From Rhodosorus marinus CCMP1338 (taxonomy: Eukaryota > Plantae > Rhodophyta), in assembly GCA_029953675.1 (NCBI GenBank), contig JAMWBK010000009.1, positions 1,736,001-1,800,000 of the forward strand: DNA of 64,000 bases, given 5' to 3'. Made by a program: the position numbers and the translations under genes. Below the pieces are notes generated by a model. That model saw only the letters and a program-made list of their open reading frames with translations. It was not told the DNA's origin and did no database searches. Numbering within the stretch: position 1 is the stretch's first letter; each line of letters begins with the position of its first letter. Positions 32,725 through 59,200 of the stretch are shown here, one piece after another.

Positions 32725-34167
32725 ATTTGCTGTAGGGCTTTGGGGCTCTAGTGTGCGTGTTTTTCATTTTCTTCTTAGGGGTAATTTTTTTTACTATCTC
32801 TTAAGAATAACATAATCCGGATTGATGATAGTCGATTCCTCTCTCATCAAACGCGGTATTTTTGGTCGCTCAAGCCCTCGTGCTCTTGATTAGACGTGGC
32901 TGGCTTAGTTTTCTTCAAAACCCATCGCAGTTCCAGTTCATGCACCTTTTCTCAGTTCGCGCAAGTTTCCAGTCGAGTGTCAGCGACCTCGGCTTCACAT
33001 GTTAAAGCAGCCCAGTCAGCACAGACTGTTGCGTTTAGTCAATCATGCGCCCTCATTGTTCAGGCATAGCTTGAGCGGACTACTGGGCAACAATCGTGGG
33101 CCCTTTCCGCTGGCGAGCTACCCTCCGCAGCCGTCTGCAGTCGGCATACTACAGAGCTGGGCGATATGAGCAAAATAGAGCAGCCGGAGGCGTTTGGGGG
33201 GAAACTCGTGAGCTATCGCTGCCAACTTTATGGCCCTGAGCCCTGTTGGTGATATGACTTAGCTCACGCGTAATTCCGTGAAATCGATCCACCGGCGCGA
33301 TCACCAAGCAAGTTCCTCGATTCCTGGATACATCCGCGGAATGTCGGTCAACGATATGGATGCAGCCAGCGCTAGATAAATTTGATTGAGAAGCGTTGCT
33401 TTCAACACCGCTGCTCCATCAATCAAGGACTTGATTTATTGTCGCTTTTTTTTTCTTTCATTGATGACTTTAGGAGCTACTCGCCGGGTTCAGCGAAAGA
33501 CCCCCCCCCCCCCTTCGCGTGACTGCCTACCACTGGCGTCATAACCAGAGCTTGGGCTGCTGAGACGTCCTAGTCGAATACCCACCAGATTGTCCCGCCC
33601 CCGACGTACTTTGCTCTGCCAATAATGTTACCTCCGATTTCGAAATTCGAGAATAAAAATAAGATCGAGCAAAGATGCTGTCAGTCGCCAGAAGTGCAAC
33701 ACACTCATCCGCTGAGAAAAATGCTCGTGAATCATCCACACGTCAAATCCATTGAAGTTTCAAAGCTCGCAAGCGCGGGAACAACTTCTCTGGAATCGTG
33801 TGTTTGGTGATTTGAACACAAGTGCGTGAAGCATCGGGATCGGGTGGGGGAGAGCTCCAGGAATCAGTATGGTGGGAAATTTCAGTGCGTGAGCTGAAGA
33901 ATAGCTTACATTGGCGAAGACCATGCCCCAAGAAAGCTTCAGCTTGGCTGGCGTTTTGGTTGACGTGTAGATTGAGTTTATCCGGCGCTCACATGCTATG
34001 ACCCTAGGATTATCGATCTGTGTTGCACGGTTGAAGTACTGGAGTTCGTTGTTTTCTCGTTGATTGGGAAGATGGGAGACCTCTTCCTGCGCATGTGGTT
34101 GAGTTGAACCGGTCCGCAGCGAATATAGGGCTAGCTGCAAGTGTCTCATACCCTTCGGGAGACCATC

Positions 34168-36226
34168 ATGGGAGAGCAAGAGAATCATAAGGTTATTGGT
34201 TTGAGGGAGGATGGGTGGGTTACTCTCCGGGAAGGAGAAGGATGGCAGAGAGCAGAAGTTGGCGATGAAATTGTCATAAACGCAATTGGCCGCCGAAATG
34301 AAGGAAAGGCAGAGCTCGACAGGCGGGATAACCTGCAGCTTATACTTGGCGATAGCAGCGGTAAGCCCCTCAAGGCATGACCGGCGTTGCTTCTCTTAGT
34401 AACCCTCTTTCTGCCTTCTGAATACGATTCCGCTAACACTTCGTGGTTTTCGCACGGGACAGTTCCAGCTTCATGGAATGAAGCGCTCGAGTCAATGGCC
34501 AAGGGGGAAATTGCAAAAGTGTTCACAGCCGAGAAAGAACTCGAAGCTGGTGGATTTGATAGGCGTTCCGCATGGTATGAATTGGAGCTTCTTAGCTGGA
34601 TTCCAAGGCGAGACTTGATGCACGACGGTACTGCTATCGAGTATCTCTTGAAAGATGGGGAGGGGTGGGAACGCCCGGGAAGAATTTCCGAAGTGCACCT
34701 TCGCATGGAGCTACTAACAACTGATCCAACCCCGAGAGAAATTTTGCCTAGCATTGAAAAAACTCTAGCCACAGAATCACCAAACGTTCCTGAGATGCTG
34801 AGGAGATCTATAGACTCACTAAAGATCGGGTCTATTGTGCGCATCCACTGCAAGGCTTCGCGTACCAAAGAGCTGGTGAGGCTCTTCGATGCTCCCTTGG
34901 AAGGGGAAGTCAGCCTTAAGATGGAGCTCCTCCAATTCTCCAAAATGGAGGATATCTTTGGAGACGAGTCCGGCGTGAGAAAGGTTAGTTTTAGTTTGCC
35001 TTTTTTTTTGGAACTAGTCGTCCTTTCGTACACCGGTGCTATTGCGATTAATTCGCAAAAGCTCGCACCCGGTAGGGCGGAACGGAGGTCGATTGCCTCA
35101 TGGTTCTCAACGTCGACATCGTGCACCTTGTCATTGGGTTTCAGGTACTACGAGAGGGGTTAGGCTTCGAGAAGCCCGGTGATGGAAGCGAAGCCACGTG
35201 CCAGATCTCGTACAGGAAAACGGGAGATGCCACTGTACTCTGGTCTGGTTCACTAACTTTCGTAACTGGTGATGGTGTTACTGCGGAGGGAGTCGATGCG
35301 GCTGTTAAGAGGATGAAGCGAGGGGAAAAGTGTATTTTGTATCTCCGAAAAGACCGAGCGTTTTCGGACCGGTTTTCTCGGTTCGCCCCCCCGGGGGTAT
35401 TTTCTGAGGAGGATCTAGTGGCTGAGATTGAGCTCGTGGACTTCAACAGACCCCCTGCAGTGTGGACGCTGCCATTTGATGACGCTATATCTGCTATGAA
35501 AAGTAGGAAAGATCGGGGCAACGAACTATTCAAGGAGGGAAGGTATATTGAAGCTCTGGACCATTACGATCGAGCGGAAAAGTGCATGACCAACTGCCGA
35601 ACCGATCTAGACGTGCATCAGAGAGCGGCTGTTGACAGTATCCGGGCGACATGCCTTGTGAACATGGCCGCGTGCTATGATAAGCTGGGAAACATAAAAG
35701 AAATGCTCGCTCATGCGGATCAGGCAGTGTTTTTGGAGCCGCAGAGTGTGAAGGTCGGTCAAGATTGCTATAGAGAAGTTTTTGACGCAATAGTCATGAA
35801 TTTAAACCATCCTAGCCATGGTTTAATGCTGAGCTCTTTTCGGATGCAACAGGCTCTATTCCGACGCGGAACTGCACATATGAAGCTCGGCAATTTGCAG
35901 CAGGCTCTAAACGATGTTAGGTTCGCGGCTGACAGTGGTGCTGGAAACGATCCCGACGTAAGAAGACGGACGAAGGAAATCATTGCGAAGATATCCAAAG
36001 AGGTAAGAACTTCGGGCAGGACGTCATGGGCATTGGGAACTCGCGAATAGAAAACTACGATTCGCTCCGGGCCAGCTTGGAATGGGGAGAAAACGCCAGT
36101 CTCGAAGAGCGCAAGTTTACAATAGTTTGCATGTTTTTCGTATCTCCATGCGGTCTACAGGAGCGGGAGGAGCGAGAAAAATATCCCCCGAAATTTCGCG
36201 ACATGTTCAAGAAAAAGGAAGGTTAG
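34168..36226 (+). CDS. Multi-domain FKBP/TPR co-chaperone (FKBP62/ROF1/PAS1-like architecture), 5 exons
   Basis: Three FKBP-like units (LREGEGWQR, LKDGEGWERP, LREGLGFEKP ... VDAAVKRMKRGE ... EIELVDF), then TPRs (KDRGNELFKEGRY...A; CLVNMAACY; ALFRRG.A). Canonical GT-AG introns; the last exon ends ...FRDMFKKKEG. Confidence 0.85.
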
Positions 36227-36493
36227 TTGTGGAGTCGCCAGTTTACATCAGTTCTCCCTCGAACCGATCAGCAGATGCCGGCGCAGCATCAGATAACGCG
36301 GCACAAACTTAAGGTGTCCCTTCGCGCGACACGGATGAGCATAACTATTCGGCAGTCGTTTGAACTGGTAACTAATGAATGGTATGCCTGGCCCTGCGCT
36401 CTTGTAGCTTCCGGGAGAAACAATTGCTTTCTGCCAGATTAATGGCTCCCGGTAGTCCTTTCTTTTGGCCTTAAGTGGGTTTGGATTAGGCAT

Positions 36494-37854
36494 CTACGCA
36501 TCCTGTCCAGTACCTTCCTTCCGGAGTAATGGCTGCGAGGCGCTTGGTGGGTCCAGGTAGAGTATCTCATGTGTTGTGAGAGGAGAAATTCTACCCAAGG
36601 CAGCAGCTACTCCGCAACTAACTCCCGCCGCTGCCGACATTATTAAAAACAACTTTTGCAGCCCAAGGTCTTGATAAATTAATCCACCCGCGAGGGAACC
36701 ACATGCGTATCCCAAGCCCCAGTGCGTTCCAGTAAGCAAACCCTATTTGAAGAAGAGTTGGGAGGTCATTTATAGTTGATGGGTTCCGTTAGTCTGGGGT
36801 TGAATGACTCCTGTGCCGGCGATATTCCATGATGAAGACTAGATATTACCTGCATGGTTGATCTTCCATTGGGAGGGGCAATGGCTCTGAAGAAATGCAC
36901 ACCGCAGGCATAGAAAGAAGCAAACGTAAGGCCGTGAATAGCCTCCATTGGCAAAATTGTCCATGGATTAGAAACCACTGAGTACGTAGCAAAGCGAAGG
37001 ATGTAGCCCAGTTGTGCTAGAGCGACGAGGTTGAAAATTCCAATACGTTCCATCAGCGGTCTGATGTAGAAGAAAAACGGTATCTCACTGATGCAGTTAA
37101 CGAATCGGGCGAGTCCCATCAAAACGCCTGGTGCACCTAGCTCTTTGAGGCGGAGGAATAAGTACGAATCCAGAACGCCACAAAATGATCCAGAAAATAA
37201 CGTAACGACGAGAAATAGACATGCATCCGGTCTCTGAAGGGATCTGAGGAGTCCCCTTACGAAGGATACCGAACCCGCGTCGTCCCGTTGAGAATCGCTC
37301 TCTCCTGCATCCAGATCCCGAAATTTCAGAAGGACTAATATGAAGCAGAAACCGTATAGGACATTCATTTCGAAGGCTCGCTCAAATTTCCCGTCCCCAA
37401 TGAGGGTCCCAGCGATCAGCGCAGCTATTCCAAATCCAATTGACCCTAAAAGACGCGCAGATCCGTAACCACCACGTGTCCTCTCAACAGAAATAGAATC
37501 CAGAAGCGACGGGAGTCCCGACATGGACGCTGAGAACAATGCGGAGAGAAGGAGGATGATCCAGAATTCACGAGCAAGAAAGTACATTATCGTACGAGCA
37601 GCGACCCCACAAGTCGCTCCCACTGCAAGCACGGCGATCTTGTTGCGCGTCAGGTCTCCGATTGCAGGAACCACTGGACCGGCTACTAAAACAATTACCG
37701 GTCCAATGCCCGTAAGAAACCCTATCTGTTCCTTCGCGATGCCAATACTCTTGTACCACAAGGGCAAGTACGCTGTTAGAGACCCAAGAATACCGAAGAG
37801 AAAGACATACGCCAGCTTAATCTCCGGAAACTCGAACACGCCTACATTCGTCAT
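36494..37854 (-). CDS. MFS transporter (MFSD6 / MFS_1_like family), 2 exons
   Basis: About 12 hydrophobic segments; YLPLWYKSIGI..EQIG, GGYGSARLLGSIGFG, SEIPFFFY, EAIHGLTFA. The intron after ...RSTMQ joins to GLLTGTHWGLGYACGSLAGGLIY. Confidence 0.9.
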
Positions 37855-37964
37855 TCTGAGCTATTACGCCGACGGTCGACGGCGGAGGAACGGTAACGAA
37901 AGACGTGCGCGCGCACTGCTATGTCAACGGTGAGGGCGCTCTCAATCTCAAGAAAGGCCTGCAC

Positions 37965-38350
37965 TCAGGGCCCTCCAAAGTATTCACAAACGAAAACCTT
38001 CTCAACACTAGCCCCCTTAACCTTTTCTAGCTCATCCATACACAGCATGTACTTTAAATGAGCCATCCGTTCCCAGGCAATTTGGTCCATCTTCTCTAGC
38101 CAGGACATCACAGCGGCATCCCTCGGCCCGCTTTTCTTTATGCGAGGCGTACATGGAGAAATTCCGTCCACACAGAGCGTTGCTGAAAAGGAGCCGCGTT
38201 GCACTGGGCTATTAGAAAATAGCAGCAGCTTATTTTCAATGTAATTCAAGTTTTCCCAAATTAGAGTTCGTAACGAGGGTGCGACTGGACCAGTAAATTC
38301 GTTATAATTTGATGGTGAGGGGCGCTGATGGACCGCGCTCCTTGCTCCTC
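37965..38350 (-). CDS. Possible last exon(s) of an unidentified gene
   Basis: Open frame ending in the helical-looking RDAAVMSWLEKMDQIAWERMAHLKYMLCMDELEKVKGASVEKVFVCEYFGGP. There is a plausible polypyrimidine-CAG acceptor near 38350. I could not fix a start or recognise a family. Confidence 0.3.
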
Positions 38351-38549
38351 TCTGGCATGACAGGGAACAGAAGATCAATAAACGGATGATGAACAGATGG
38401 CCCGAATTGACTGTCCTGGACTGAATTGGGTTCTTACTACAGCCCAGAGAGCCCGTAGATAGAGCGCAGTTTTTCACAGGCTTGCTTTTAGATTGAAGCT
38501 TTGCCTTTTAAAGAAACAGGCCTTATGGGCTAGATTGAAGTCCCACTTG

Positions 38550-38875
38550 ACCTCAGTCCTTCAATGGTTTTTGCCGAGGTTCCGTCCGGGCTACTACGAC
38601 GGCAGCAGCCTCCTGTATGGGTCCTAATTATGTCTTATGTACACGAAAACAGGAATCGTTGACTTCTCAGTTTCCGAGGTCATGCATTTCTAGTTTTGCT
38701 CCTTTTTAAGCTCGCTTGCGTACGCGATTTACTGCAAATTCTAGGTTGATTTGGACAAGGTTCACTGCTATGGAGCACACCCTCGTAAAGCCTTCCCTAT
38801 TGACTAAACCACGTATCCATCTAGCAAGCATACCTCAGTCCTTCAACGGTTCTTGCCGAGGTTCCGTCCGGGCTA
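38550..38875. repeat. Direct repeat pair, 44 bp with 2 mismatches, 282 bp apart
   Basis: acctcagtccttcaa(t/c)ggtt(t/c)ttgccgaggttccgtccgggcta at 38550-38593 and 38832-38875. Confidence 0.95.
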
Positions 38876-39284
38876 TGTGCGTCGTGGCTGGTCCTCGTCG
38901 CTCGTCCTTTCCGCACGTCGAGGATTGCCCTTTGCTATCCGAGAGTGTACCTATCGAAATAGTATTAGACCCTAAGCTTCCCTACAAAGAAACGAATCAA
39001 GCTTCGGTTCGAAACATTACTGGCTAATTCTCAAAAGCCGTAGGCCAAACAGTACGTGAGCGTCTAGAATGCTGGCGAGATAGCTTGCTCTTGTCTACAT
39101 TTTATTGGTTACCTTTTGTTTTCGTTGAGACAATGCTTATGCAGCTCTTCTACAGGTAAACAGTTCAGCTCTTTCCGACTGTACCAAGCTGAACTAGCAT
39201 CTTATGACTCTGCCTTCCGATCCAGGAAAAAATTTCCGACTATCGCCCAACGCCTCCGTTCTACTGCTCGTCTAGGACATTCAA

Positions 39285-40608
39285 CTAATCTCCTGTGAAG
39301 TACTTATAGAAAAACCGCAACTGCTCCCCGCTTTGTATCATCCCGAAACGCTGTTGTTTGAGGCTGAGCACCGTTTGTCGAAAGTCCTGCCAGATTATGA
39401 TCAGAGAATGGGGAAGGATTCAGCCCGCTTGTTAGGACCTTCAAGGGGATCGGAAGTCACCAAATGTGTATCGATCCTAGCAGGCCAGTTCGACCTCTTC
39501 AGCGGAGAGGATTTGTCAAGACCTTACCTGCGGCCGTAAATCCTCCCCCGCTTCCAGTCTCTGATTTGTCCAATGGATTGCAATCAGCGTGCCCGTCCTC
39601 CCTAAGCCTGCACTGCAATGGATGACGGTTGGAACGTCCTTCTCACGGGCTTCTCTCGCATCTATGTACTCCACTAAATGTCGCATGCTAGAGTCGGGCT
39701 CTGGCACACCGTGATCCGGCCATTTCTGGAAGTGCACCTGTTCGATTCCCTTGGTGGTGTTTTTGTAGGAAACTCGGAGTATTCGCACCACTCCAAAGTC
39801 TTTCTCTGCCTCGCTTTCCAGTTCAACCTTGAAGTTCCCAAACGTCATTTCCTCCATGTTCGTTGTTGGCCAGTACCTGTCAGCCTTGGGTATTCCGTTC
39901 TCCACAACATTGGTAAGCATGATTATAGAAGGCACTCTATGCTCCCATATCATTTTCCAGAAGTCCTCCATTGATTCTTGGAGCGGAGCTTGGGTTGCTA
40001 TATACTGTCGTGGTCCAGAAACACCCGAGACATAGTTTGCGTTGATGTAGTTTCTCGAAAGTGTTGGCTTCTGAAAACCCTGCAGCTTCACCCTGGTTTT
40101 CTCATTTGCAAGAACATTTGTATACCGGTTCTTTTTCTGGTTCACACCGCTCAGAGCTGCCCGAAAGTCAGATTCATCCAGGCTTTCTGAGGCTTCCCTT
40201 TCAATGCTCTTGTTGAGCGGAAAAGGTAGAAGTTCGCGCATCGCGGTCAGTGCACTATGAAAAAACCAAAGCCTTCAAGTGGCTGAACAAATGGGTCCAT
40301 TTGGTCAAGTCTTCCGGCGACGTCAGCGTACATCGCAACGCAGGTTTAGACCCATAGACATCCGAACAGACCGAAGAAAAAATGAAGTTGATCGAAGTCT
40401 CGACACATACCTGCAGTTCCCCAATCCAAGCACGTGGCACTCTGTCCATTTCCTCAACTACCTCCTTCAAGCCTTGGGCTGCTCTGCAGCTTGCCATTGC
40501 TGAGAACAAGCGCGAATACGGACGAAAACCTCTGCTGGGTATGCCACCAATGGGCCACTCCTCCGAACTCTGCTTGCGCTTTCGCCCCCACAACAGACGC
40601 CCTAGCAT
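39285..40608 (-). CDS. Classical protein-tyrosine phosphatase; N-terminal exon structure uncertain
   Basis: KNRY, YINANYV, YIATQAPL, WPDHGVP and HCSAGLGRTG motifs. Intron 39387-39527 joins to DFRQTVLSLKQQRFGMIQSGEQLRF (Q-loop). Stop at 39285-39287. Confidence 0.92.
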
Positions 40609-41511
40609 GTTGTGGCTGCGTTGGTGTGTCTGCGTGCTTTCCGAATGTTGGGAAGGCATGGAAATCACCATCGGACTGATTGCGTTCCGTGCATTAGAGC
40701 AACGCATGTCTCAAACGCGTTTCCACAAGTCATAGAGTCTTTACTTCTGGGGCATTCGAGGTTTCACTCTAAGAACGAATGCGTAGTCGTGCATTGTTCC
40801 TGTAGCTTGCCTGAGAGGACTTTTCCGCAATGCCATTGGACACTACTCGAGTCATTGCCGATTGTCCTGTATTCGGGGAACCGTCCTCGAGTCCGTTGCT
40901 CTTGCATAAGGTACAACGGACATAAGAGATCTATCCTATTCTAAGAATTAATCTCACGGTTGCTTGTTCTGAACAATTTTCCAGTGAAGGAACTGCTTCC
41001 TCGTAGGGGAAGAGATGAGGGCTACATTCGGAGAGTCTTCAATCTCAGGACTTGAAGTGGGGAATCGAAACTCAATCGGCTTCTGGGCAGATTGTAGTGC
41101 AAGCAAGATATTCTTCGAATGCCCTCTACGTCTGCACACCTCTGAGGGAGCATGGACAGCTGGAACAGTTGCCCGAATAACCGGGACACAGCGGCTGCGC
41201 GGACCATAATCTGCAATTGATAATGTCGGCGAAAGCGAATATGGGATCCACGCACAAGGATTGCCGCAGCGAATGCAACAGTGTCGTTGGCATCAGATGC
41301 TTTGGAAGGTGAGCAGGATCATCTCGGCTGGAATTCAATAGGTTCAACCGCTATTACGAATTTCAGTACGTATACGTATACGCGCGTTGCGACCCTTGGA
41401 TCCAAACAGCGGATCCAACTAGAACGCGCTCAGAAGAAGCTACTTTTAATATGGAAAATAATAGTGTATGAGGTACCTCAGTCTCTCAAAACTGCACGGC
41501 AGCTCTTAGTC

Positions 41512-42646
41512 CTACCCGCCGGCCGCTCCCGAGACGTACACAACGACGCCAAACTGAGCAACGAGAGCCTCCTTTTCAACCGCGCTAACCACAGGAGAGT
41601 CTGACCCGAGAACAGTGATTGAAAGGTTGGAAATCTTTGGCAGAGCCTTGGGGATGGGAACCTGATCCAGGACGTTGGCCAGCAGCAGTTTTTCAAAGCT
41701 TTCAAACGCTCGATCCAGGATCACCCCGAGAACTGTCGCTGCATCGTCGTTATCCAGAATGTCTGCCTCCTCCTGGAGAAGTGTTGTAAGGTTCTCCAAC
41801 TCCTCATCTCTGCCATCGTTCGCTGCTGGTGAGAAGCAGCTTTCAACCAAGATCTCCCTGAGCGCAGCTTTCGAAGTGCTTTCCACCTTTTTTCGAATGT
41901 TTATCACCGCCATCACCAAATCCGCGCACGTGAGTCTACTGTCCAGTTGCATTGGGCCAACAACTTCCACGACAGCCTGCTGAATCACGCGCACCAAGAC
42001 CTCCATACATGACCCGAAGAGGCTCACTCTCGCAAGCTCCACGAATTTATGTTGTGTTTGCTTAGTCAGAAATCCTGAGGGGAGCTCGCTCATGCTTTTC
42101 TCGCTTGACATGTAGCGGCCAACTAGATTGAACTTTGTGACAAGGACTAGCTCTAGTAGACATATCGCGTATACGGATGCAATCGGTCTCACAAAAGAGA
42201 CCACCTTAAGCCTTTCCCAAAGATCTTTTTTATGCTCCCATACCGGTGTTGTTTGCAACTCTCTTACGAGACTGTCCGAGTCCGCCAATTTGAAGACGAC
42301 CTCTCGAACCTCCGGTAGCATCTTCCTGAGCAGCTCGTGGGCGTGCTTCAAGCTTGCCGTGAACCTGAGAAGTTTAGGAGGCGAAAAGCATTAGTTGGAT
42401 GACCTCCTACCATTCAACCCCGGATAACCTTTCTCGATGGCATTCTGTCTATCTAACGCACCCATCTTGAAGCCTGTTGGCTCCGCTCTCTCTCTCTTCT
42501 TCCAAAGCTCGCGTTATGGTGAGGTATTTTTGACGAAGAGAGTAGTACACATAAAGACAGGTAGCACCTCCCACGGCTATAGCAATCTTGATACGATGCC
42601 TTTTTATAAAGCCAAAGGTTGAACTCGCAACTGAAGACAAGCCCAT
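41512..42646 (-). CDS. PEX3: Peroxin-3 (peroxisomal membrane biogenesis factor), 2 exons
   Basis: N-terminal FIKRHRIKIAIAVGGATCLYVYY (basic cluster plus TM), KKDLWERLKVVSFVR..ASVYAICLL, TKFNLVGRY and IPKALPKI resemble Pex3 motifs. One intron before FTASLKHAH. Confidence 0.85.
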
Positions 42647-43723
42647 TGCTCCCGGAGCAGTTACGGCTATACAGAATATTTGTGGCTCCTCGACAAAATT
42701 CGAAACTCCCTCGCTTGCTATATGCAGAACCGCCTACCCACTACCATAGTCCAGGCGCGGAGCCGCCTCCTTATTTGCTTGGCGCGAGCGCCTATGGCAG
42801 GAAGCTGCTTCGTACACAGCGCAAGTGCACTGAGCGTCTCCCCTCAAATCACCTGTACATACCTGCGCACAGTCACTTGCTATCAGACATTGGAATTGCC
42901 CTTGTCGCCTCACTTCTTCCTCCCAGACGAAGCCACCCGTGATCCTCGAAGGCGGAAAATTATTCCACTACTTCAACTTGTTTGGCTCGCTACTTGGGAG
43001 AGGATGCATATTCTTGTTCCGTAGCTGCAGACAATACGTTTTGTATGCAGACCGATCTTACGGGCAAGCAGCGTTGAGAGAACTGCTCCAATCCTAGCAT
43101 GACAGGTAGATTGCGTTAGTCTGTCTTATGTTGGGAGACCGTAGATCCCATGATCTCTTTCGCGTGGAAGATAGGCAACACACGGGAAGCGAGATCTTTC
43201 ATGTTTCACGGACGTCAATAAATGGCTACTTTATCGCTCTTCATTCGCCGTGTGAAAAGCAAGTCCGCAAGAAGATCAACGGGGAAGCCTCCCTGCGTTC
43301 GTCGCCTCAATTTCAGATTCTCGACACGTTCGCGTTGAAAGGACATAGCTTGCACATGAGCTCGCGAACGATGTGAAGGAACAACCTGGATTCTCCGCCA
43401 GTGCATCCAACAAGCGTAGCAAATCTGGACACCTTTCCCACGAAAGGAAGCAAGTCTGTCTGAAATTGTGCGGTCATCCTCGGCTGTCGCTACGTTACAT
43501 GAACGGGGAAGGCGGTCTGTTGCAGTGGGATGTGGGAAAGGCAGCTGGCTAGGAAGGGATCTTCCGAACTACGGGTATAACTAGTACAAGGAACGATTTG
43601 CAGCTTGAGTCGTTCTTTTCAAGTTGGTAAAAGCAGAGCATGTGAATAGTGGGAACGGACGACCGAAATCCGGAATGACTTTGACCTCCGGTCCAAGCTC
43701 GACTTGTATGAACGCACGCAGAT

Positions 43724-45925
43724 ATGGCTCAGATCAGTGGTCAGAAACTGGGTTTAATCTTTGGCTCGGTGCGTCGCAGATTTCTTTCATTCCTTTCTCT
43801 ATGCTCGCAGATTTCAGAAGAAGTATAAAACCTCAGATCAACCGACAGCCGTCTTGGGTGGCCCGAAGCACTGGTAATTCCCAGGCTGGATCACCTAGCA
43901 CCGGAACGAAGCTTGTACAGCTTCAAAAGGTGACATATGCTTTTGGGTCGACAGTTGTAATCTCGGATCTCGACTTGGATCTTGTTGAAGGTGAAATCGT
44001 TTGCCTTCTTGGCCCATCAGGTGGGAGGCCGTCCCCACCCGAATATTCAAGATAAATCTCCAGGCCGATACTACAGGATGAATCTGAGAGGGACTGCTAC
44101 TCCGTGTGGATGAACAGGGAGCGGAAAGTCGACCATACTGAGGATAATCGCGGGATTAGCTAAACCAACCAGTGGTCGGGTGTTGTACAGGGGTAGAGCG
44201 TTCGAAGGAGTCAACCCTGGCACCGCCATTGTTTTCCAGACGTTTGCCCTTTATCCATGGCTGACTGTACTGGAGAATGTGGGGCTCGGGATACAAGCCG
44301 GCCCCTCGCGCAGGTCCATCGCACTGAAAGCCATCGACACGATCGGCCTCGATGGGTACATTGATGCATACCCGAGGGAACTAAGTGGGTTAGTTTGTAC
44401 CAGTTGCCGCAGACTAGTAGAACCGGCGACTACTGCGTAAATAATCCTCATAGCAGATAATTTTCAAACACCAGGAGCTAACCTACGGACGGTCACCACC
44501 TGTCAAAACTTACAGGGGAATGAGGCAGCGCGTCGGCTTCGCCAGAGCCCTCGCGGTTCAGCCTGAAGTGCTTTGTATGGATGAGCCGTTCAGCGCGTTG
44601 GACGTTCTGACGGCAGAAAATCTTCGTTCAGAACTATTGCGGCTGTGGCAAGGAGGAGAGATCCCCACGAGATCCATTTTCGTAGTTACCCATGGGATAG
44701 AAGAAGCAGTGAGCATAGCGGATCGCGTAATTGTGCTGCAGCGAGACCCGGGACGAGTACAAGCCATCCTCCCAATCGCTATACCTCACCCGCGGGACAA
44801 GAGGTCCCCGGAGTTTCAAACGCTTGTGGATCGTGTGTACACTGTTATCTCGCGCCCCGAAGAAGACGCAGACGAGCTCCTTCAGACCTCCGATGCTTCG
44901 TCCGAGATGTCGCAAGTCCCTTTGACCGTGATGGACACGAAAATATCTGTTGATAGCGATGCACAAAGTCAGACCGAGACGAAAAGGTAGCATCGTACTC
45001 GACTTTCATGGTCATCCCCTTCTGCGAGCCCGTTTGAGGCCTGCCGTTTGTAACTTTGCGGTGAGTATGGATCGAGGTACTCGGAGACATCTGGGTCTGA
45101 TGTGTGTTTCTCTATCCGCAATCGTGTGTTTGAAGGAAGCCCATGCTCCCTGCGGTGCGAATAGGATCTGTTGCCGGACTGCTCAATTTTATTGACGAGG
45201 ATGGCACGGACATCTATCGCTTGGGACAGAGCTTGCAGCTCGACGTGGATGAAATTTATCCAATCATTGAAGCAGCGGATTTGATAGGCCTGGTCGATGT
45301 CCAAGAGGTAGACTTGCGTTCGCCTTGAACATAAGTGTTGGAGGAACCAGTAGAGACTGAAATTCGCGTTTACTGCTACCCCGCGATGGCTAGGGAGACG
45401 TACTCGTTAATGATCGCGGTGCTGAATTTGTAAAATCCAGCATTAATCAGAGGAAAGCTCTTGTTCGAGAAAGCGTTCTCAAAGAAGAAGGAAGCTGGCT
45501 TATACCACAAATATATCATCTCCTGGGCCAGTCGAGACGTTCGAATCGGATTCCGCAGGAACTAATCTTTGATATGGTGCTGCTTAAGCACTTCACGCCG
45601 CAAGAAGCTCGCAAGCAGCTCGAAATTGCCATTGGTAGTATATTATCCAACCATTGCTGCCAGCGTGATGAGCCACGCTCTTCAATAGCCCTTCCACGGG
45701 TCGTGATAGGAGTCTCAACTGGTTGTGCACTGTCTCCTTGTTTTAGAGTGGGGTAGGTACGCCGAGCTGTTCACGTACGATGCGCTTTCCGGAGAGCTCT
45801 TCCTCGTCGAAGGAGAGGATATTATAGCGCAAGAAGAATTGGAGAGACCAGACCTCCTGAGACATCGGCTACAAGTTACTAAGACCGAGAGCGAGGATTT
45901 CCCGGAGAGAAGTGCGGAGACTTGA
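43724..45925 (+). CDS. NitT/TauT-family ABC transporter ATP-binding subunit with a C-terminal AAA-associated domain (prokaryotic type), 7 exons, about 519 aa; start uncertain
   Basis: Exons 43724-43739, 43811-44020, 44118-44388, 44516-44986, 45136-45307, 45394-45634 and 45747-45925 sum to 1560 nt in frame. Walker A GPSGSGKST, VFQTFALYPWLTVLENV, signature LSGGMRQR, Walker B LCMDEPFSALD, VTHGIEEA and C-terminal EWGRYAELF.YD are present. No transmembrane domain. Confidence 0.9.
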
Positions 45926-46648
45926 TCACTGGTAGATTGCTTATGCTTGATGGCAAATTCGAGTCGCGATTTCGCTTTTTTGCGACTTGTTGCGAGTCCG
46001 CAAGGTGGGAAGCTACGGTAATGAGGCAAGGGAAGAACGTTCAGGGGGCTCTAAAGTCAGAAACGTTATACAACGGCTCTTGAACGGACCAAAAGAAGTC
46101 GTGAATGGTTCGAAGGGAACGAAACAAAGCTGTGAACGATCGACGAAGTCAATTAAAGAGCCTCGAACGGCTGAACAGGTCAAGAAGAGGCCAAAACAGA
46201 AGTAGCTAGCCGTATTTTCTACGCTACTACCTCTCGAATGTTCTTGCGCAAGTAGTAGCAAACAGCCATAAAACCCTGGTTAGCAGGCTTGGCTGTTCGG
46301 GTAAATTGGAACTAAAGATGGACCGAATTTCCAAGTGGAAACGTGTAGCGCGCAACATCCTCAATTATGACGTATGTGAGCGAGTAACAGGCTCTCGAAA
46401 ACTACGTGGTGGTAGGCTCTTTGACAGGTAGGAGTAAACAAGAAAATCATCTGCAGCGGTTGTGCCATAACTGCGAGCAGAGTAAGCGAACGCAGGCGGC
46501 CTTCTTTCTTATCGCCAGAACCAAGTCCAAAACCGTTCTCAGCTTTCGTTCCTCGGATGATGAGTTTACCACGGCCCGTGCGCCAGCCGGCCAGCTAGGG
46601 GTTACGTTTGTCCGGGGATAGCCGTATGACACTTTATTTTACTAATCT

Positions 46649-46727
46649 GGTCCTTGCCACCTGACCAGTGTGTAGGCTCACACTGGTCAGGTGGCAAGGA
46701 CCCGCCAGTGTGAGCCTACACACTGGT
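46649..46727. repeat. Nested inverted repeat: perfect 24-bp stem with a 6-nt loop, followed by an inverted copy of its inner 22 bp
   Basis: ggtccttgccacctgaccagtgtg-taggct-cacactggtcaggtggcaaggacc (46649-46702), then ccagtgtgagcctacacactgg (46705-46726), which is the exact reverse complement of 46665-46686. Confidence 0.97.
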
Positions 46728-47074
46728 TAGAACAAGAGCATTGCGATGGGAGTTTTCTCGTGTCCTCTGGTAGCGTGAGTACTTTGGGGATCGACCATAT
46801 GGATGGTCGCGTTTCGACGTCTTCTTAGTTTAACCCACCACCGCCGTTCTGTCTTCCCTTCATGAAAGAGAGCTCTTCCGAAAGGCGCAGAGTGATCTCA
46901 ATCTGCGTACTGGCCGCCGTGGGTGTGTCCCAAGAGATGAGCATCTGAGCCTCAATTGTCAAGGTGTTCCTTGCTATCTTCTTCTGCTGCGAGTTCTCGC
47001 TCCGATAACGAGTGAGGGACTTCCTATCCGTCGGAAAGATTTTGATCGAATGTGGCACACAGCTCTTCCTCGAT

Positions 47075-50938: not shown

Positions 50939-52796
50939 ATGATGCGTACAGCCGGGGTCACTAGCCATCAGCCGAGAAGAGTTGCGGACATCATCGTAAG
51001 TCTCAGTAACGTACGCGATTCCCTCGCTGCTGGACTTTTCGTCTGAGTAGAAGACTGCTCTGTAAAACTTTTTCGCAGGATCTATATGGACATAACAAGC
51101 CAACTGTTGTAGAGCAGATGAAGTCGTTGCTGGAGTCCCACCCAAATTGGAAAGCGAAATGTAGTTCATTCACGTACTCAAGTGGACTCGAGCACTCGCT
51201 GGTTTTGCTTTTTGGTATATTGGAGATCTCGCCTCCTCTTTATTATCACAGGGGCATGGTGCCTAGCAGGAGAGTGCCCGTACGGGTTTGGATTCCTTAC
51301 GGTTTTCCAAAAGAACGCCCTATTGTTATTATTGAAGTTCCGCTTGGTGCGCAGCTAGTCCGGCGTGATTTCTTGTTATCAGGGTCTTACGAGGTAACGT
51401 CGAAACCCCAAGCTACGTTCGTTGACGAACTCTAGGCTGACATGATTTGCTGTTTCCCTGCCTTGTGTTGGAAAGGTTGACGTGATGAAAGCGCTGGACT
51501 GGGGTTCGGAAGTGGAATCGCTTCGATTAGCTTTGGTCACGTTGACGTCACTGTTTTCTTCGTTCCCACCTCTGTTTGTACCACCCAATCTTTTGCACAG
51601 CTTGTCAGACCCACCTGTGACAAGAAGCTCATCTTTTCAACGCGGCAAGAGGCAACCTACCCTACAATCTGCAGCGTCTTCCTCGTTCGCAAAGTCGGCG
51701 GATCTAGAGCGGCGAAGGAGCTCTTCATCGAAGCCAACTGGAAATCTGCAGAGATCGGCATCTGAATCGACATCGAAATTAGCTTCTCATCTAGGTTCGC
51801 AAGGAAGTCTGGACCAGATCACGAGGCCTCAGTCGACGGCATCGGTTCAGTCAGTATCAAGCTCATTTCAATCGTCGCCCTCGAGACTACCGTCGCGTTC
51901 TGTGGTCAGCGAATCGCAGACCATGCCCACGCACACCAAGTCTAACTCGATGGGGTCAGATGTCATGAAGAGGTGAGCTGCTTTTCATTGGATATTCGTT
52001 GACAGGTGTCAGCATATCGAGAATTGCCTGTAGAAGCAATTGCCGTATCCAGAGGTGCTGCCCAAGCGGGGGACCGTGACCTACAAAAAATTTGACTGCT
52101 TATGGCCCCTCTTTGTGATGTGACGATAGGCAAATGGTTGCGGCGGTGACGAAGAACGTGAGGGACGCTCTGGTACAGGTTACTGAGAAGTCGCTCCTGG
52201 ACGTTGTTTGCGAACAATCGAAGCTAGTCAATTTGCAAAAGACTGTTCAGATGATTGAATCAGCCAAATACCAGAGGTCCGTCGAGTTCAGTAAGAAAGC
52301 CAATACGCTCCTGAACGAGGATGAGAAGTTGCGCCATCAGCTGGACGTGCAGGTGAGGAGTCTGATCGAGGATCCCAGTCTTGAAGGCGCGGTTGGACTA
52401 ACTCTTTGCACTCGTGTATTTTCGAGCAGGTAAGACTTATCAAGGAGATCGGCGAAGTCGACCTCAGCAGCGGACGGGATGTTGAGCTGCGGTATCCTAT
52501 ACTTATCAACCAAATAGTCACTAGCAGGGCAGAGGATTTTGCACTGCGAGATGCGCTGGACGTGTTGGATGAGGCTTGCTCGCGGGGAGTGCTTGGTATT
52601 GACTCATATTTAAAGGTGCGATAGTGTACGAAATGTCGTGTCTTTGTTGCGATGAGCTGGTCATAACAAATAAGTTGACGAAACGAGCTGAATTCACATT
52701 TGCTAGGCGGTTGGGGAAGTCGGCCGCCAGCAGTTCTTTGTTCGCGCCACGTATCGAAAGGCTTTTTTCGTTAGGCATGGCGTGAGCTCTACCTGA
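50939..52796 (+). CDS. VPS23: ESCRT-I subunit VPS23/TSG101 (UEV domain, Ser-rich linker, coiled coil, Vps23 core), multi-exon; 3' end slightly uncertain
   Basis: UEV-like SLLESHPNW...FTYSSG...LVLLFGIL...PVRVWIPYGFPKERP...LFSSFPPLF. Core NQIVTSRAEDFALRDALDVLDEACSRGVLGIDSYLK, spliced to AVGEVGRQQFFVRA. Confidence 0.8.
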
Positions 52797-53367: not shown

Positions 53368-54641
53368 TTAGTAGATTCCCAACAGAGTCAAGAGAGCAAA
53401 GACCAAGAATAAAACGCCGCCGATAAGCCTCGCGTTTCTCTCTGAAATGTATTTTCCGAGAAAGAATCCACCTAGTACTGCTATCACGGTTGCGACAACA
53501 TGGCCTGCAATACCACCGAACACAACACCCAGCGGAGACTTCGCCGCTGCTAACGCGATCGTTGCGATCATACTCTTATCACCCCATTCAGCAACAAAAA
53601 CTAGACTGAAAGTCTGAAGCAGGAGTCTCAAGCCGCCAGTGGATGTCAACGCACGCCACCATACTTCCGTTCGGCAGCGCATTCGTGAAAAAGGGAAAGC
53701 GTAGTTAGGCAGGGGAATTCACTGGGCAATGACTAGAACTCAAGATCATCCAGCTTCACTATTCTATCCTCCGATTATTGGTTCTCCTACCTGTTCCCTC
53801 ACTTTCCGCCTCCTTCACGAACTCTTCCGCGTCTTTGAGTTCTCCATCCTCACCTCCCTCATCCCCAGAGAGCCCGTCTCGTATATTCTGGTATCCGAAG
53901 AAGAGCAAAAGTGCAACCGCCGCGTAGTCGTCGAACGGAATGGCAGAGTGCAACGTCGTCGGCAAAGCGTGGAAAACCTGAAACGGAGACGAAAAGGCGG
54001 GGCGCCACTGGGTGGGTCAGTAGCAACCTGCAAGTAATTTGATCATTAAGTGGTTCTATACTTCGCGTCAGAGGGTTTCAAAACGTTTCGACAATCGGAA
54101 TCTTGAACATACACGCTATAGTAATGTCAATAGCTTAAGTTATTCTAGCGATTCTTACCTGCCCAATAAGTACAGAAATTATCGTCATCAATCCAAGCGC
54201 CAACACAGATCCTATGAACACGATCGCCCGGCTGTATTTCATTGCCAGCAGAGCGCTAATGAAGAAAGTCTTGTCCCCAATTTCTGAAACAAGAATCAAG
54301 ACGAAGGAAGCTGAAAAACCCGCGGACAGGGATCCAACGAGGCTGACTGCAGCGTGCGCGGGCTGGAGCGAAGCCAGTATTACTAGTCCAACCGCTGCAG
54401 TACTCGCGAGTGCTGGTCGACGCACGGGTGGCACAAATCTTCCAGGCTTAAGCTCATTTCCCTCAGCCGTCTCTGCAGATCTGTTGGCAGATGCCCGCGT
54501 CTTCAATCGCCTTGTCGCAATGGGATGCTCACTTGTTGTAATGTCGCTCTCCAACGAGCACCTCCCTACCGTTCTTACCGGACGTCTACCTGCCAAACTC
54601 CCAAGCGGAACGAAAGCCGCTTCTTCCATGAATCTCGCCAT
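53368..54641 (-). CDS. CMT1: UPF0016/GDT1-family Mn2+/Ca2+ transporter, chloroplast CMT1/PAM71-HL-like, 3 exons, about 321 aa
   Basis: Two family motifs, SEIGDKT and AEWGDKS. Exons 54641-54159, 53977-53791 and 53663-53368 give 966 nt in frame. N-terminus MEEAAFVP...GRRPVR resembles a red-lineage transit peptide. Confidence 0.88.
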
Positions 54642-56213
54642 ATTTGCTTCCGACTTGTTCTCACCTACTCCCCGCTCCCTCGGCGAGAAGTTGACGAACT
54701 GGTTTGCCTCTGCTCAGAAGTTTACGGGCTTGGGGATGGGCCGGATAGTGATATCAACGGCTTCCCCAAACCTTCCGTCTCTGAGAAGCGTACAATGGAT
54801 CACCAAACTCATTAATCACGCGTTTCCTCCCCGTAGCCGCGCATGTACCACTCACTGTCTTAATCCCGCTCAGTTTGCAGATGGCGGTGAATGCAAAAAT
54901 TGCTTGTAGTAGCATTTCGCACCCATTGCAAATACCAATATCGTCTAGCACAAGCCATTCCAGACCTCAATCTCGGTTACCAGGACGCCGAAGCGTTCCG
55001 ACCCCTTAGAAAGCCAAGGTATTCGGCATATTGTTCAGTTTTTCTACGAGTATTTAAGAATACGAGCTTGAAGATGTGTGTTCTTCTTAACCCTACGTGA
55101 CCTGCTGTGGAATTTGCAGTAGCTGATTAAGCCGATCGCTTTTTGATGGTTCAAGATTGACCAACGCCTGCGGCATTATGATTATTACTCAAATTTAAGA
55201 AACTATAGCCGCAGGTGGATGGCGCTGGTGCGCTAACCATGTCTTGTCATTTTGGACGTTGAAGCGGAATCTATTTGTTAGTCGTCTTCGTACATAACCC
55301 TGCGCGCAATCTGTACGTGGTACCTTAAATGTAAATGCTCGGCTGGACGGAGCTCTTTATCTCGGCAACCGCCGATCTTACTCGGGGGCTACATAGTCCT
55401 CGGAAGTTGAGAACCTCGATTCGGAGGGGTGTTGCCAAAACTCTCACGGACTAGCGTGCATGAGCGATGACTTGTATATCAGTAGCCTATTCAATTTGGG
55501 CTTGTGAGGAAAGAATTGATTGTTCCCGTCTGCTCTTCATCTATTGCACCTAAAAGCTTTCCCGAGGTTGAACTAAGAAGAATCGCTACGAATTTCCAGC
55601 GCAACAACGAATGTGTGCGCAACAGGGCGTACAATGTAACGGAAACCTCAATCCTAGAATGGACTTCTGAATCTATGAGGGATCTGGAAGAATTCGGTAC
55701 CCATCTTGATCTTCGCGGTTATATCAATTGCGTCACTGCATTAAAAGTGCCGACCACCGTGGCTACCCCAATACGGCCGGACTTTTCAACGAACGATATA
55801 CACAAGCACAGCAAATCCAGTACGATTCGCTTACGATCACGTAGATGGCATTTGCAGAATACCTTGTCCTCGGGCAAGAGAGGAACGTGGATGAGGAGCA
55901 AGACAGAGCCGGTACTGGTTCCGTTTTGCAACGGATCGTATTGTGCCTCCAAGCGTTAGTGGAGCTCTTTGCGGCGCCACCATGCAAAGGCTGCTTTATG
56001 GGATTCCTCTTCTATGCATCACGCAATGAACACTGTTTCTCAATTGGTCCTGAGCTTCGCTCGCGCACATTCAACCTTCGAGATCTTGTGTTAGGTAGTG
56101 CACTGACAAGAGGGCAGTTTTGTCCCAAATTATTATATTTTCCTAGCCCAAGCTTTGCGGGTGTACCGGGCTTTCGTCACAAAGTGTGTTTTTGGGACTT
56201 CTCCGTGCGGTTC

Positions 56214-59200
56214 CTAAGCTCGTGATGCCCTCCCCTTCTTTTTCTTTCCGGATGTCTGCCCTCCTACAATATTCCACGTATCCGCATCCGCTGGCCCGTT
56301 CGATGAATCGGCTTGCTCGAAATTTTTTCGTCTGACGAATTCGTCGGCAAAACCTGTGGCTTTCTCCGACGTGCCAAGGTACTCTACAACATATTCCTAT
56401 ATCGAGTCACCGAAAATTGCAACGAAGGTTTGAGCACATGCTCACAGTCCTCTAAGGCGAATACTAGGTGACCAGATGAGTCATTGGGATGCGTCAAAAC
56501 TAATGTAAAAATTTGCATTACCTTTATCTCCCATGCTGAGCGCAGAGTCAGCAGAAACTCGGGAAGGGTGGTGTCCGAGCTTCCAGTGATCTTTCGCATT
56601 TCTCCCTGGCACCATTTCGCGAAGTCCGGCGACATACTCGCTCCGAACGCATTCTGCTTCGCACTCATGCTCTGATGGGGTGGGTTCGTATTTGAAACTG
56701 AGGACATAGCCGAACCCGCTATTTGCCTTTCCGCAGGAGCTCGTGTAGCGGAAGCTGTGAGAAGCGTGCTTGCTTGCACATGAGCAGCTGATCCTTTTCG
56801 TCTTAGCGATGCCTCCGCCGCCTCCCAAAAGTTCTCTCCATCTTGATCAACAGAACCGGCCGGACCAGCAGGTCGACTTGCCTGGGCTGAAGCAGTCGAC
56901 AGTACTGAGCCTGTTGATTTCATTTGTTTTTGGGTGGGTACCGGTCGATGGACAATTGAAGCAGCGGCTTGCTCAGGTGGTCTGTTAGCTCCCGCAACTT
57001 TTGCGGCCCAACCGCTCGTAGTAGAAATCTTTGGTTCAGACAGTGCAGTTGCAACCGTCCTCTTCTTCTCTTCTTCTTCAATCCTCATTTGCTCTTTCAG
57101 AGACATCGAAGGAGCGGAGGGAGCAACCGAACCCCAAGCCCCCCCTCGTGAAGAGGATGGCGATGAATTAGGGTTTGGAGTTACCTGAGTAGTTTCTTTC
57201 TTCATCATTCGGGCGTTCTCTTCCTTCGCTTTCTGACGTGCCTCTTCCCTGAGAATGTCAACAAGTGACGTGCTCTTTGCTTGTTGAGCTGCGACTCCCC
57301 CCCAGGCTGGCCCGCCAGCGCCCGCCTTCGGGGCTTGCGCCTGTCGTAACTTCAATTGTTTCAAGTTTCGCTTCTTTTGCTCCTCCGCTCTTTTGGCCTC
57401 CTCCTCCTGGATGTCCTTCAACGATGGCAATGCATCCAATCCCTTTGTTGCCTTGTCCGATGCTGTCCAGGGTGCAGCTGCTGTACCTCGTGAAGATGGT
57501 TGCTTGCTATATTCCTCTTTCACTGTGATGCCGCCTACCGCATCTGCAGTGTTGCTCTCCCCTCGGTTTGTCCTTTCGTCAACCCCGCGACCACCAATCA
57601 GCTGCGGTTGCGCTTGAGTCTCGAGGGAAGCTTCGCTATGGGTCTCTAGGTTCTGACGCTGCTTCCTATTTTTGCCTCTTGATCCTGGAGCTTCCACGGT
57701 TTCCCATTGGGCCATTGTCTCATCCTGCACAGCACCAGTGGAGTCCTCATTCTCCTTGAGTGAATGAAAGTAAGGGCTGTCTTAGTCAACGGACGGTTCA
57801 CACCAACTCTTGCAGGAATTTAGAAGTTGACTACTTATTTCACGGCAGCGGGCCGCAAAGGAAGCAGTCTCCAAAGGCTGCCGGCTCCCAAAAAAGCCAG
57901 ACTAGCAAATGCTATACTCGAGTTATCACTGTTGTGGTTCTACTTTGGCTTACCCGCTCGTCCGAGTTCAGGGCGGGGCTCTGCTTGGTGCTGGCGCCTG
58001 ATCCCTTCCCGATTTTCGCGTTCCCGACGGTCTCAGCGCTCTGCTGAATGTCATCCGGGGTTGACCCTTTCAACTCTTTTTCTGCAGTGAAACTAACTCT
58101 CACGACGTCTACGAGAGAAAACGCGAGAAGCAAAATGTAAAACGGGTACGAAAGAGTGGTTTCCAAGTTTTCAGCGACGACAAAATGTAGCTCGTAAGCT
58201 GAAGAGGTGTTAGACGACGTGGAGCACTCAGCGCCCTCTGAACGCCCTCTCAACTCCAGAGAAGAAACTAAGCAAACAAAGTGATTGGCAGTGAGCCGAA
58301 GCAAGCGGTCGCTTACCTTGTTCCTGCTCATGAAATTTTATTTTTTGAGTTCGGTCTGCCTCCGTTCCAGCCGCAAGTCCATGGATACCGACAGATCCCT
58401 CAAGCGACCTGGCAATGTGGGGCTTTTGTTCCCTTCTCAACTTGACCCCTGCCATGTCTCCTCTGCTGAAGTCCAAGCCCAGAGCACCCTCGTCATAATG
58501 GGGTTCTGGTTCCTTCAGTGAATTGGATCCTGTCCCAGACTGGTTGGCGGAGCTGAAATTAGTACCGACTTGTCTCTAGAGAGCAGGATGAGACACACAG
58601 GGATATGGTGAGACGGCGGGAAGCGAAAGCGAATTGTTTCTGGGCTTCCGAAGAAAGTAGGACTACTGGAACAAACGTACTATTGTTTTTGGTGTAGCCT
58701 CCTTTCCAGAAACCAGAGATTGGTCGCTGGCTTCGCGAGGTGGACTTCGGTCCACTGTTTGATTCGAGTCGGTTGTGAGCACTTTATGCTCCAGCCACCA
58801 CTGATCGGAGTTCATTTGCTTCGATTCCACCTGACATCCGAAAGAGGCTATTGCTGGATCAATTGCCATAAGCGATTCACCTTTCTGTGATACATTTCCG
58901 AAGGAAAGGAGTTGTGGGGAAATGTCAAGCACGTGGTTCAGGGTTCCCCGTGGCTTTTCAATTCTTTTCTTCTCGAGCGTTGCGTTACCTGCTCGGTTGA
59001 TTTTGACTCACGAGTTACCGAGTTCGCCAACAAGTCCAGAATGGATGGAACATTCGCCTCTCCGTCGACTTTGGCGCTCCTGTATTCTACTGGAGGCTTG
59101 CCAGTGGGGACGACTTCGAGGCCTTGAACAGGAAGGATTTTATCCCCTGGTTCTTGTATAGCCGTTTTCCCACCAGCCACGGAAGAAACGTCGTGGTCGA

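Follow-up and report, generated by a model that had tools for sequence, protein, structure and literature searches.

A nuclear ABC ATPase gene of the red alga Rhodosorus marinus, with close cyanobacterial relatives and a putative plastid-targeting presequence

A stretch of 64,000 nucleotides (nt) from Rhodosorus marinus CCMP1338 (contig JAMWBK010000009.1, positions 1,736,001 to 1,800,000), called the window below, carries an ordinary nuclear gene of this alga (NCBI NDN08_007000) for the ATPase subunit of an ATP-binding cassette (ABC) system. In our judgment it probably encodes the ATPase of a cyanobacterium-derived, two-gene "Nrt/Ssu/Tau-like" ABC system that is plastid targeted, has an unlinked permease, and works independently of a binding protein. 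We favor this reading because of the domains of the protein, its cyanobacterial sister clade, introns shared with a distant red alga, N-terminal presequences, and the tight coupling of ATPase and permease in prokaryotes. GenBank already lists the gene as coding for a hypothetical protein, and its family is known though uncharacterized. An earlier note, made from the window alone, took the gene for an importer-type ATPase acquired by horizontal gene transfer (HGT) and without a simple plastid function. The present analysis corrects that view and offers what appears to be a clear case of a component of a cyanobacterial operon turned into a nuclear gene with a presequence.

The coding sequence runs from 43675 to 45925 on the forward strand (+) of the window and, by three-frame translation and junction mapping, consists of six coding exons and five introns encoding 559 amino acids (aa) (Table 1). 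The six-exon translation reproduces KAJ8902599.1 exactly ("hypothetical protein NDN08_007000," 100% identity). Transcript support comes from a related Rhodosorus strain, represented by L001, a 2188-nt contig of JGI sample 3300016967 whose encoded protein is 94% identical and whose DNA is 82-95% identical to the window. Its alignment blocks omit exactly the five introns, supporting the junctions from the related strain, and P0003, a protein from an MMETSP transcript with 95% identity, is colinear over junctions 2-5. Reading in frame from an upstream stop, the first ATG is at 43675; it is kept in L001 (MTLTSG in the window, MIFTSC in the related strain) and is the start used in KAJ8902599.1. Two further in-frame ATGs lie downstream, at 43708 and 43801, and the choice among the three rests on sequence.

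The earlier note had proposed seven exons and six introns starting from ATG 43724. This ATG is out of frame, opens a 34-codon open reading frame (ORF), and is not conserved in L001, and the proposed first exon and intron (43724..43810, +) turn out to be part of the exon 1 coding sequence in a different reading frame. L001 is colinear with the genome over 43475-44021, so the 5' region is unspliced. The in-frame GT..AG combinations from ATG 43724 were enumerated, and the seven-exon model was rejected because the transcript is unspliced there. The note's start and first intron are thereby lost, but its other five introns stand, including those inside Walker A (GPS/G, phase 1) and the signature (LSG/G, phase 2), as does its placement of a soluble ABC ATPase gene on the forward strand ending at 45925 (stop TGA at 45923-45925). 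The 5' leader of L001 is at least 200 nt long, possibly from about 43196; aligned to the window it has two gaps, and it contains several out-of-frame upstream ATGs (window 43196-43675; L001 1-388).

Pfam searches identified ABC_tran (PF00005, E 1.8e-30) and AAA_assoc_C (PF09821, E 8.1e-30, 104.3 bits with the cut-off at 27.6, all 119 profile positions covered), in agreement with the prokaryote-type architecture described earlier, a nucleotide-binding domain (NBD) joined to PF09821. The catalytic motifs, rightly reported as intact, occur in canonical order: Walker A GPSGSGKST, Q-loop Q156, signature LSGGMRQR, Walker B/D-loop LLCMDEPFSALD, and H-loop H265. They are invariant or nearly so across 56 homologues. 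The C terminus carries EWGRYAELFTYD, confirming the end motif that had been pointed out. In an AlphaFold2 model built on 56 homologues, residues 1-73 are disordered (predicted local distance difference test score [pLDDT] <35), the NBD (aa 78-335) scores a pLDDT of >90, the linker (aa 337-358) is again disordered, and the C-terminal domain (aa 365-520) is confident, reaching a pLDDT of 92 when modeled alone. By sequence as well as by fold, the nearest solved structures of the NBD are cyanobacterial CmpD and NrtD.

What kind of fold does the C-terminal domain adopt? Searches of the PDB returned no sequence match to it and no fold match at E <= 1e-3. Among the weak fold matches, those whose matched part could be recognized are winged-helix modules: O-methyltransferase dimerization domains, SSo2273, the recognition domains of FokI and BpuJI, GntR, TtgV, OhrR, and SelB. 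Together with the order of secondary structures in the model, these weak matches indicate that the PF09821 domain is a putative tandem winged helix. The same winged-helix prediction was reached with HHsearch by Li et al. 2012 (PMC3688454).

In protein searches, the matches ranking above cyanobacteria are all eukaryotic where they can be assigned, at 52-60% identity (excluding two near-identical Rhodosorus sequences). Named orthologues come from Hildenbrandia, Porphyridium, Galdieria (three species), Gracilaria, Agarophyton, and Pyropia, and the other top-ranking matches are longer proteins with N-terminal extensions or lie on contigs with eukaryotic flanking genes (E2F/DP, BAH, cytochrome haem lyase). 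With the Stylonematophyceae of the window, the orthologues thus span Porphyridium, Galdieria, Hildenbrandia, Gracilaria/Agarophyton, and Pyropia. Cyanobacterial proteins of 437-460 aa come next, at 53-56% identity. A prokaryote scan of GTDB, with one genome per species, likewise gave cyanobacteria as the best loci (49-55% identity), followed at 41-50% by Acidobacteriaceae, Sulfobacillus, Clostridiales, Verrucomicrobiia, Actinomycetes, and Ktedonobacteraceae. A metagenome scan with a eukaryote-only alignment returned bacterial contigs among the at least 600 matches listed, and the locus inspected (L093) is bacterial.

A neighbor-joining tree was built from corrected distances for 68 sequences and 429 columns with 200 bootstraps, from a sampling that left out Chlamydiae, green algae, and glaucophytes. 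It supports a eukaryotic clade (99.5%), core cyanobacteria (100%), and a group uniting the two (97%). Several characters set the eukaryotic sequences apart from the cyanobacterial ones: five residues (QQPNG) are lost, the linker is longer, LRSELLRLWQ stands against LRFELLDLWL and HPRD against HYRD, and one residue is inserted in IFDTILLKHF. Because the red-algal clade is sister to core cyanobacteria and marked off from cyanobacteria by these derived characters, we infer that the gene probably reached the nucleus from the plastid ancestor by endosymbiotic gene transfer, followed by vertical descent, and not by a later HGT. The protein hence essentially sits in a vertically inherited cyanobacterial-plastid clade, the function of the family aside, an outcome that goes against horizontal acquisition as the earlier note had it. 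Separately, two Nostoc metagenome-assembled genomes (L055 and L071) hold a second, divergent ATPase/permease pair that groups with Acidobacteria and not with core cyanobacteria, suggestive of lateral transfer among soil bacteria.

The introns provide a date for these events. Mapped onto the alignment, all five Rhodosorus introns are matched in the Galdieria partita orthologue (L004, 10001-12141), which has about 9 introns of some 45-55 nt each. Each match agrees in codon and in phase: at the Walker A Gly (phase 1), at the first Gly of LSGG (phase 2), before the LP of the C-terminal domain (phase 2), between E and GDV (phase 0), and at the Glu of AI-E-WGR (phase 1). Since these introns are common to Galdieria (Cyanidiophyceae), which branches at the red-algal base, they are best read as predating crown red algae, with the gene already nuclear and intron bearing in their last common ancestor. 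The shared introns, two of which cut through Walker A and the signature, would thus place both transfer and intron gain before the radiation of living red algae, and the description of the gene as "long-domesticated" holds in this sense. The Porphyridium purpureum orthologue (L005, 10001-11662) is intronless, with a single ORF of 1662 nt for 553 aa; Porphyridium lost its introns secondarily. A comparison of Rhodosorus, Galdieria, and Porphyridium clearly shows introns retained in some red algae and lost in others.

The window protein exceeds its cyanobacterial counterparts by 78 aa at the N terminus, a stretch with 7 K+R against 3 D+E (net +4) and 27% Ser+Thr that is disordered in the AlphaFold2 model. 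Every red-algal orthologue examined has a basic extension of 49-110 aa, and several begin with MAFV, MAFA, or MFVV. These MAF/MF-type starts match what is typical of red-algal and glaucophyte transit peptides, which contain phenylalanine. Judged from these sequence features, the presequence is most likely a plastid transit peptide and the protein most likely works in the plastid. The earlier statement that no obvious transit peptide is present rested on a wrong N terminus: the upstream coding sequence from ATG 43675 adds the presequence, and with presequences throughout the orthologues, the argument drawn from it against plastid function fails.

In prokaryotes, the ATPase is closely tied to a permease. 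We examined 80 genome loci and 80 metagenome loci. A permease with duplicated BPD_transp_1 adjoins the ATPase on the same strand in 71 of the 80 genome loci and adjoins it in 65 of the 80 metagenome loci, which fits the expectation that the bacterial gene sits beside a permease gene. The gene after the ATPase in Calothrix and Tolypothrix encodes a BPD_transp_1 protein of 576-579 aa. The partner permease resembles NrtB/SsuC/TauC weakly. When all flanking ORFs of 80 prokaryotic loci were clustered, neither a third conserved gene nor a binding protein was found across phyla, and no binding protein was detected for the PF09821 system by Li et al. 2012 either (PMC3688454).

The sole recurrent neighbor of the prokaryotic pair is a response regulator, in Acidobacteriaceae only. 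It is a 125-aa single-domain CheY-like receiver encoded about 400-700 nt upstream of the ATPase in divergent orientation on the opposite strand; it occurs in 47 Acidobacteriaceae loci (L026 and 46 others) and is absent in cyanobacteria. In four representatives of 50% clusters, presumably bacterial (P0266, P0267, P0273, and P0269), the protein of NBD plus PF09821 is extended by a fused MgtE_N, alone or together with CBS (modules that sense Mg2+ or nucleotides), or else by one or two KdpD sensor domains. One may speculate that such fusions hint at regulation by cations or at some other link with them.

How does the protein relate to characterized importers? Its NCBIfam equivalog and subfamily matches (nitrate, taurine, sulfonate, sulfate, phosphonate, and other importer ATPases) all fall far below the curated cut-offs: 181 against 292 for TIGR01184 (ntrCD), 183 against 357 for PRK11248 (TauB), 174 against 395 for PRK11247 (SsuB), and 177 bits against 343 for the sulfate ATPase. 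SufC is absent from the best 25 NCBIfam families. The protein is thus related to NitT/TauT ATPases while belonging to no characterized family among them. Database names for its relatives are inconsistent, ranging over ycf16, sulfate transport, and hypothetical (P0001, P0025, and P0037 in UniRef; P0031 and P0033, from Gracilaria domingensis and Galdieria sulphuraria). Family-level scores support neither "Probable ATP-dependent transporter ycf16" nor "sulfate transport ATP-binding protein." We regard the SufC/ycf16 label of UniRef as an automatic mislabel, given the missing SufC match and the presence of PF09821, and the sulfate label of Galdieria as an automatic name, given the sulfate score.

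The closest known relative is the prokaryotic PF09821 system, common in cyanobacteria and Acidobacteriaceae. Li et al. 2012 presented the "Ca. Liberibacter asiaticus" version (CLIBASIA_02415/02420) as a "possible novel ABC system" and questioned whether a system of this type transports at all (PMC3688454). The permease homologue of Liberibacter crescens BT-1 belongs to the gene set essential in culture (PMC4837290). Members of this prokaryotic system have the same domain architecture as the R. marinus protein, the same catalytic motifs, the C-terminal LP.VRIGS and WGRYAE, and a predicted winged-helix C-terminal domain, and the cyanobacterial members are 51-58% identical to it over the full mature length. 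The R. marinus copy differs from the prokaryotic ones in being nuclear, with five introns and a presequence, and in having no adjoining permease gene; compared with cyanobacterial members, it has a longer linker between NBD and C-terminal domain and lacks QQPNG.

NrtD and CmpD (PDB 8w9m, 8wm7, 9u9z, and 9ua1), which are type-I importer NBDs, match the R. marinus NBD at E 1e-49 to 1e-46 by sequence and at E ~1e-23 with Foldseek (33-36% identity). Unlike the R. marinus protein with its PF09821 domain, their solved chains are NBD only (~277 aa), and the cyanobacterial importers of nitrate (NrtABCD) and bicarbonate (CmpABCD) use single-transmembrane-domain permeases (NrtB/CmpB) plus a binding protein (NrtA/CmpA). 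NrtC and CmpC have a binding-protein-like C-terminal domain and not a winged helix. Among plastid systems, plant SufC, TGD3, and the Chlamydomonas sulfate importer SulP/SulP2/Sabc are nuclear-encoded ABC subunits of cyanobacterial type. Subunits such as TGD1 followed the same route, by which a cyanobacterial transporter was split into individual nuclear genes equipped with presequences, whose products are reassembled in the plastid. The R. marinus ATPase differs from them in ABC subfamily and accessory domain, and to our knowledge the red-algal PF09821 system has no counterpart among known plant ABC subunits. TGD1 is listed as cyanobacterial in origin by Tyra et al. 2007 (PMC2246286).

Under the preferred reading, a cyanobacterium-derived transporter reassembled in the plastid, a gene of the plastid ancestor would have moved to the nucleus and its presequence would direct the protein back to the plastid. 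In the stroma, two copies of the ATPase would dimerize head to tail around two ATP molecules, and the NBD dimer would dock, through the conserved groove formed by the Q-loop and the helical subdomain, onto a permease made of two fused BPD_transp_1 halves. Another nuclear locus would encode this permease, which would reside in the inner envelope or the thylakoid membrane. The paired winged-helix domains could hang beneath the NBD dimer and serve in regulation or dimerization, by analogy with MalK, MetN, and ModC, and a dedicated binding protein would not be needed.

Several observations weigh against this reading. No permease was found in the 64-kb window when it was searched by tblastn with the Calothrix 576-aa duplicated permease (best E 0.37), so that the earlier note was correct that none is adjacent and that any partner must be unlinked. 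Nor did inspection and tblastn reveal one in Galdieria partita, Porphyridium, or three more contigs of red-algal type at distances of up to 10 kb from the orthologue, and a protein search with the cyanobacterial permease retrieved only cyanobacteria (69-100% identity) among the 120 matches listed and no red-algal permease. The R. marinus presequence begins with MTLTSG, without the early Phe that the related strain and other red algae have, and is less typical than the MIFTSC of that strain; the true start could be one of the two downstream ATGs; and plastid targeting is a prediction. The tree is neighbor joining and not maximum likelihood, and the divergent cyanobacterium Stenomitos (L025) falls outside the group of eukaryotes and core cyanobacteria. 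Lost linkage with a permease is, however, expected for a nuclear gene and is not evidence against homology.

Could red algae have lost the partner altogether? The main open rival, which we regard as unlikely, is that the protein is plastid targeted but permease-less, a soluble ATP-driven regulator whose tandem winged helix would bind plastid DNA, RNA, or another protein, much as soluble ABC proteins do in other families. It is in keeping with the failure to retrieve a red-algal duplicated permease nearby or among the matches listed, with the resemblance of the C-terminal domain to nucleic-acid-binding and dimerization winged helices, and with the question raised by Li et al. 2012 whether the system transports (PMC3688454). 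The non-retrieval, however, reflects the 120 matches listed and is not evidence that a permease is absent, and the pairing of ATPase and permease is very tight in prokaryotes. In type-I importers, the Q-loop segment forms the groove for the coupling helix of the permease, and in this family the Q-loop and the segment following it (VFQxFALxPWLTV) do not vary from cyanobacteria to red algae. One red alga, Gracilariopsis chorda, has a nuclear gene for a NitT/TauT permease, the rhythmically expressed K02050 protein PXF50084.1 reported by Lee et al. 2024 (PMC10853006). That protein was called chlamydia derived and shared with the green lineage (PMC10853006); it may belong to another system and in that respect also counts against our reading. 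The invariant Q-loop segment and the G. chorda permease indirectly favor a retained permease partner. Literature searches for inventories of red-algal ABC proteins turned up nothing specific.

The remaining explanations fare worse. That a bacterial importer-type ATPase arrived by HGT unrelated to the plastid and acts outside it, with an unlinked permease or as a soluble cytosolic protein, seems improbable to us. Its prokaryotic architecture, the lack of an adjoining permease, and a window presequence without the canonical early phenylalanine would suit such an origin, but the gene is pan-red-algal with core cyanobacteria as sister group (97% bootstrap), and the correct N terminus adds a disordered basic extension whose counterparts in orthologues are of MAF type. 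Still less credible is a known system under another name (SufC/ycf16, CysA, or NrtD/CmpD), an idea encouraged by the UniRef and Galdieria names and by CmpD/NrtD being the nearest solved NBDs. It conflicts with the NCBIfam scores, every one far under its cut-off, with the absence of SufC from the best 25 families, and with a partner permease only weakly like NrtB/SsuC/TauC; moreover, according to Li et al. 2012 (PMC3688454), the PF09821 C-terminal domain is unique to this NBD group, the system contrasts with Nrt, Ssu, and Tau, its permease holds two transmembrane domains, and a binding protein was not detected. Bacterial contamination or misassembly, for which nothing speaks beyond the prokaryotic look of the protein, can be practically dismissed. 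It was rejected on the grounds of five GT-AG spliceosomal introns removed in the transcript and of eukaryotic flanking genes (Peroxin-3, tyrosine phosphatase, RPL10, and FKBP-TPR protein); GC content is also even across the window, and the orthologues of other red algae likewise lie among eukaryotic genes.

Retention of the gene across red-algal lineages suggests a conserved plastid function. As a tentative proposal to which we give little weight, red algae may have kept a binding-protein-free cyanobacterial ABC transporter in the plastid envelope or thylakoid, gated by a tandem winged helix and perhaps handling or sensing ions; or, the permease being lost, they may have kept a soluble, ATP-driven regulator whose winged helix acts on plastid nucleic acids. 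The system might handle or sense an ion and not an oxyanion nutrient, because bacterial relatives fuse the ATPase to Mg2+-sensing MgtE_N/CBS or to KdpD-type K+-sensor domains. We know of no such transporter in land plants. The gene also draws attention to a widespread and uncharacterized ABC system, found in cyanobacteria, Acidobacteriaceae, Liberibacter, and others.

Table 1. Positions of the gene parts and upstream neighbors in the 64,000-nt window
Feature	Positions	Strand	Remarks
RPL10	32086-32724	+	upstream
FKBP-TPR protein	35100-36050	+	upstream
MFS_1_like transporter	36766-37854	-	upstream
Tyrosine phosphatase	39516-40241	-	upstream
Peroxin-3	41512-42351	-	upstream
Coding exon 1	43675..44020	+	presequence (aa 1-78, 43675-43908) and NBD start; ends in Walker A (GPS/G, phase 1)
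Intron 1	44021..44117	+	97 nt, GT..AG, phase 1, Gly codon after GPS (Walker A)
Coding exon 2	44118..44388	+	Walker A lysine, Q-loop, helical subdomain, to signature LSG
Intron 2	44389..44515	+	127 nt, GT..AG, phase 2, first Gly of LSGGMRQ
Coding exon 3	44516..44986	+	remaining signature, Walker B, D-loop, H-loop, NBD end (~44903), acidic/Ser-rich linker
Intron 3	44987..45135	+	149 nt, GT..AG, phase 2, 4 residues 5' of LP.VRIGS, which opens the C-terminal domain
Coding exon 4	45136..45307	+	PF09821 domain, winged-helix module 1 (predicted)
PF09821 domain	45140..45805	+	aa ~365-520, exons 4-6, predicted compact tandem winged helix
Intron 4	45308..45393	+	86 nt, GT..AG, phase 0, between E and GDV
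Coding exon 5	45394..45634	+	PF09821 domain, middle part
Intron 5	45635..45746	+	112 nt, GT..AG, phase 1, Glu codon of AI-E-WGRYAE
Coding exon 6	45747..45925	+	PF09821 domain end (~45805), acidic tail, stop TGA 45923-45925

The upstream neighbors (window 32086-42351) are ordinary eukaryotic housekeeping genes. Downstream, the long ORFs at 51482-51976, 54214-54909, and 56384-57730 have no Pfam match. The 3' untranslated region may contain an intron at 46005..46390 (+, GT..AG, ~386 nt), which is uncertain: the last 70 nt of L001 match 46389-46459 and its preceding part matches up to about 45980, but an indel between strains is equally possible. About 0.7 kb 3' of the stop, at 46649-46730, lies a nested palindrome composed of a perfect 24-nt inverted repeat (46649-46672/46679-46702, with a 6-nt loop) and an overlapping 26-nt inverted repeat (46661-46686/46705-46730, 96%). 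Its 27-nt core has two copies there and none elsewhere in the window, against a chance expectation of none, and the palindrome could be a hairpin-forming, terminator-like element or the remnant of a small foldback element or miniature inverted-repeat transposable element.

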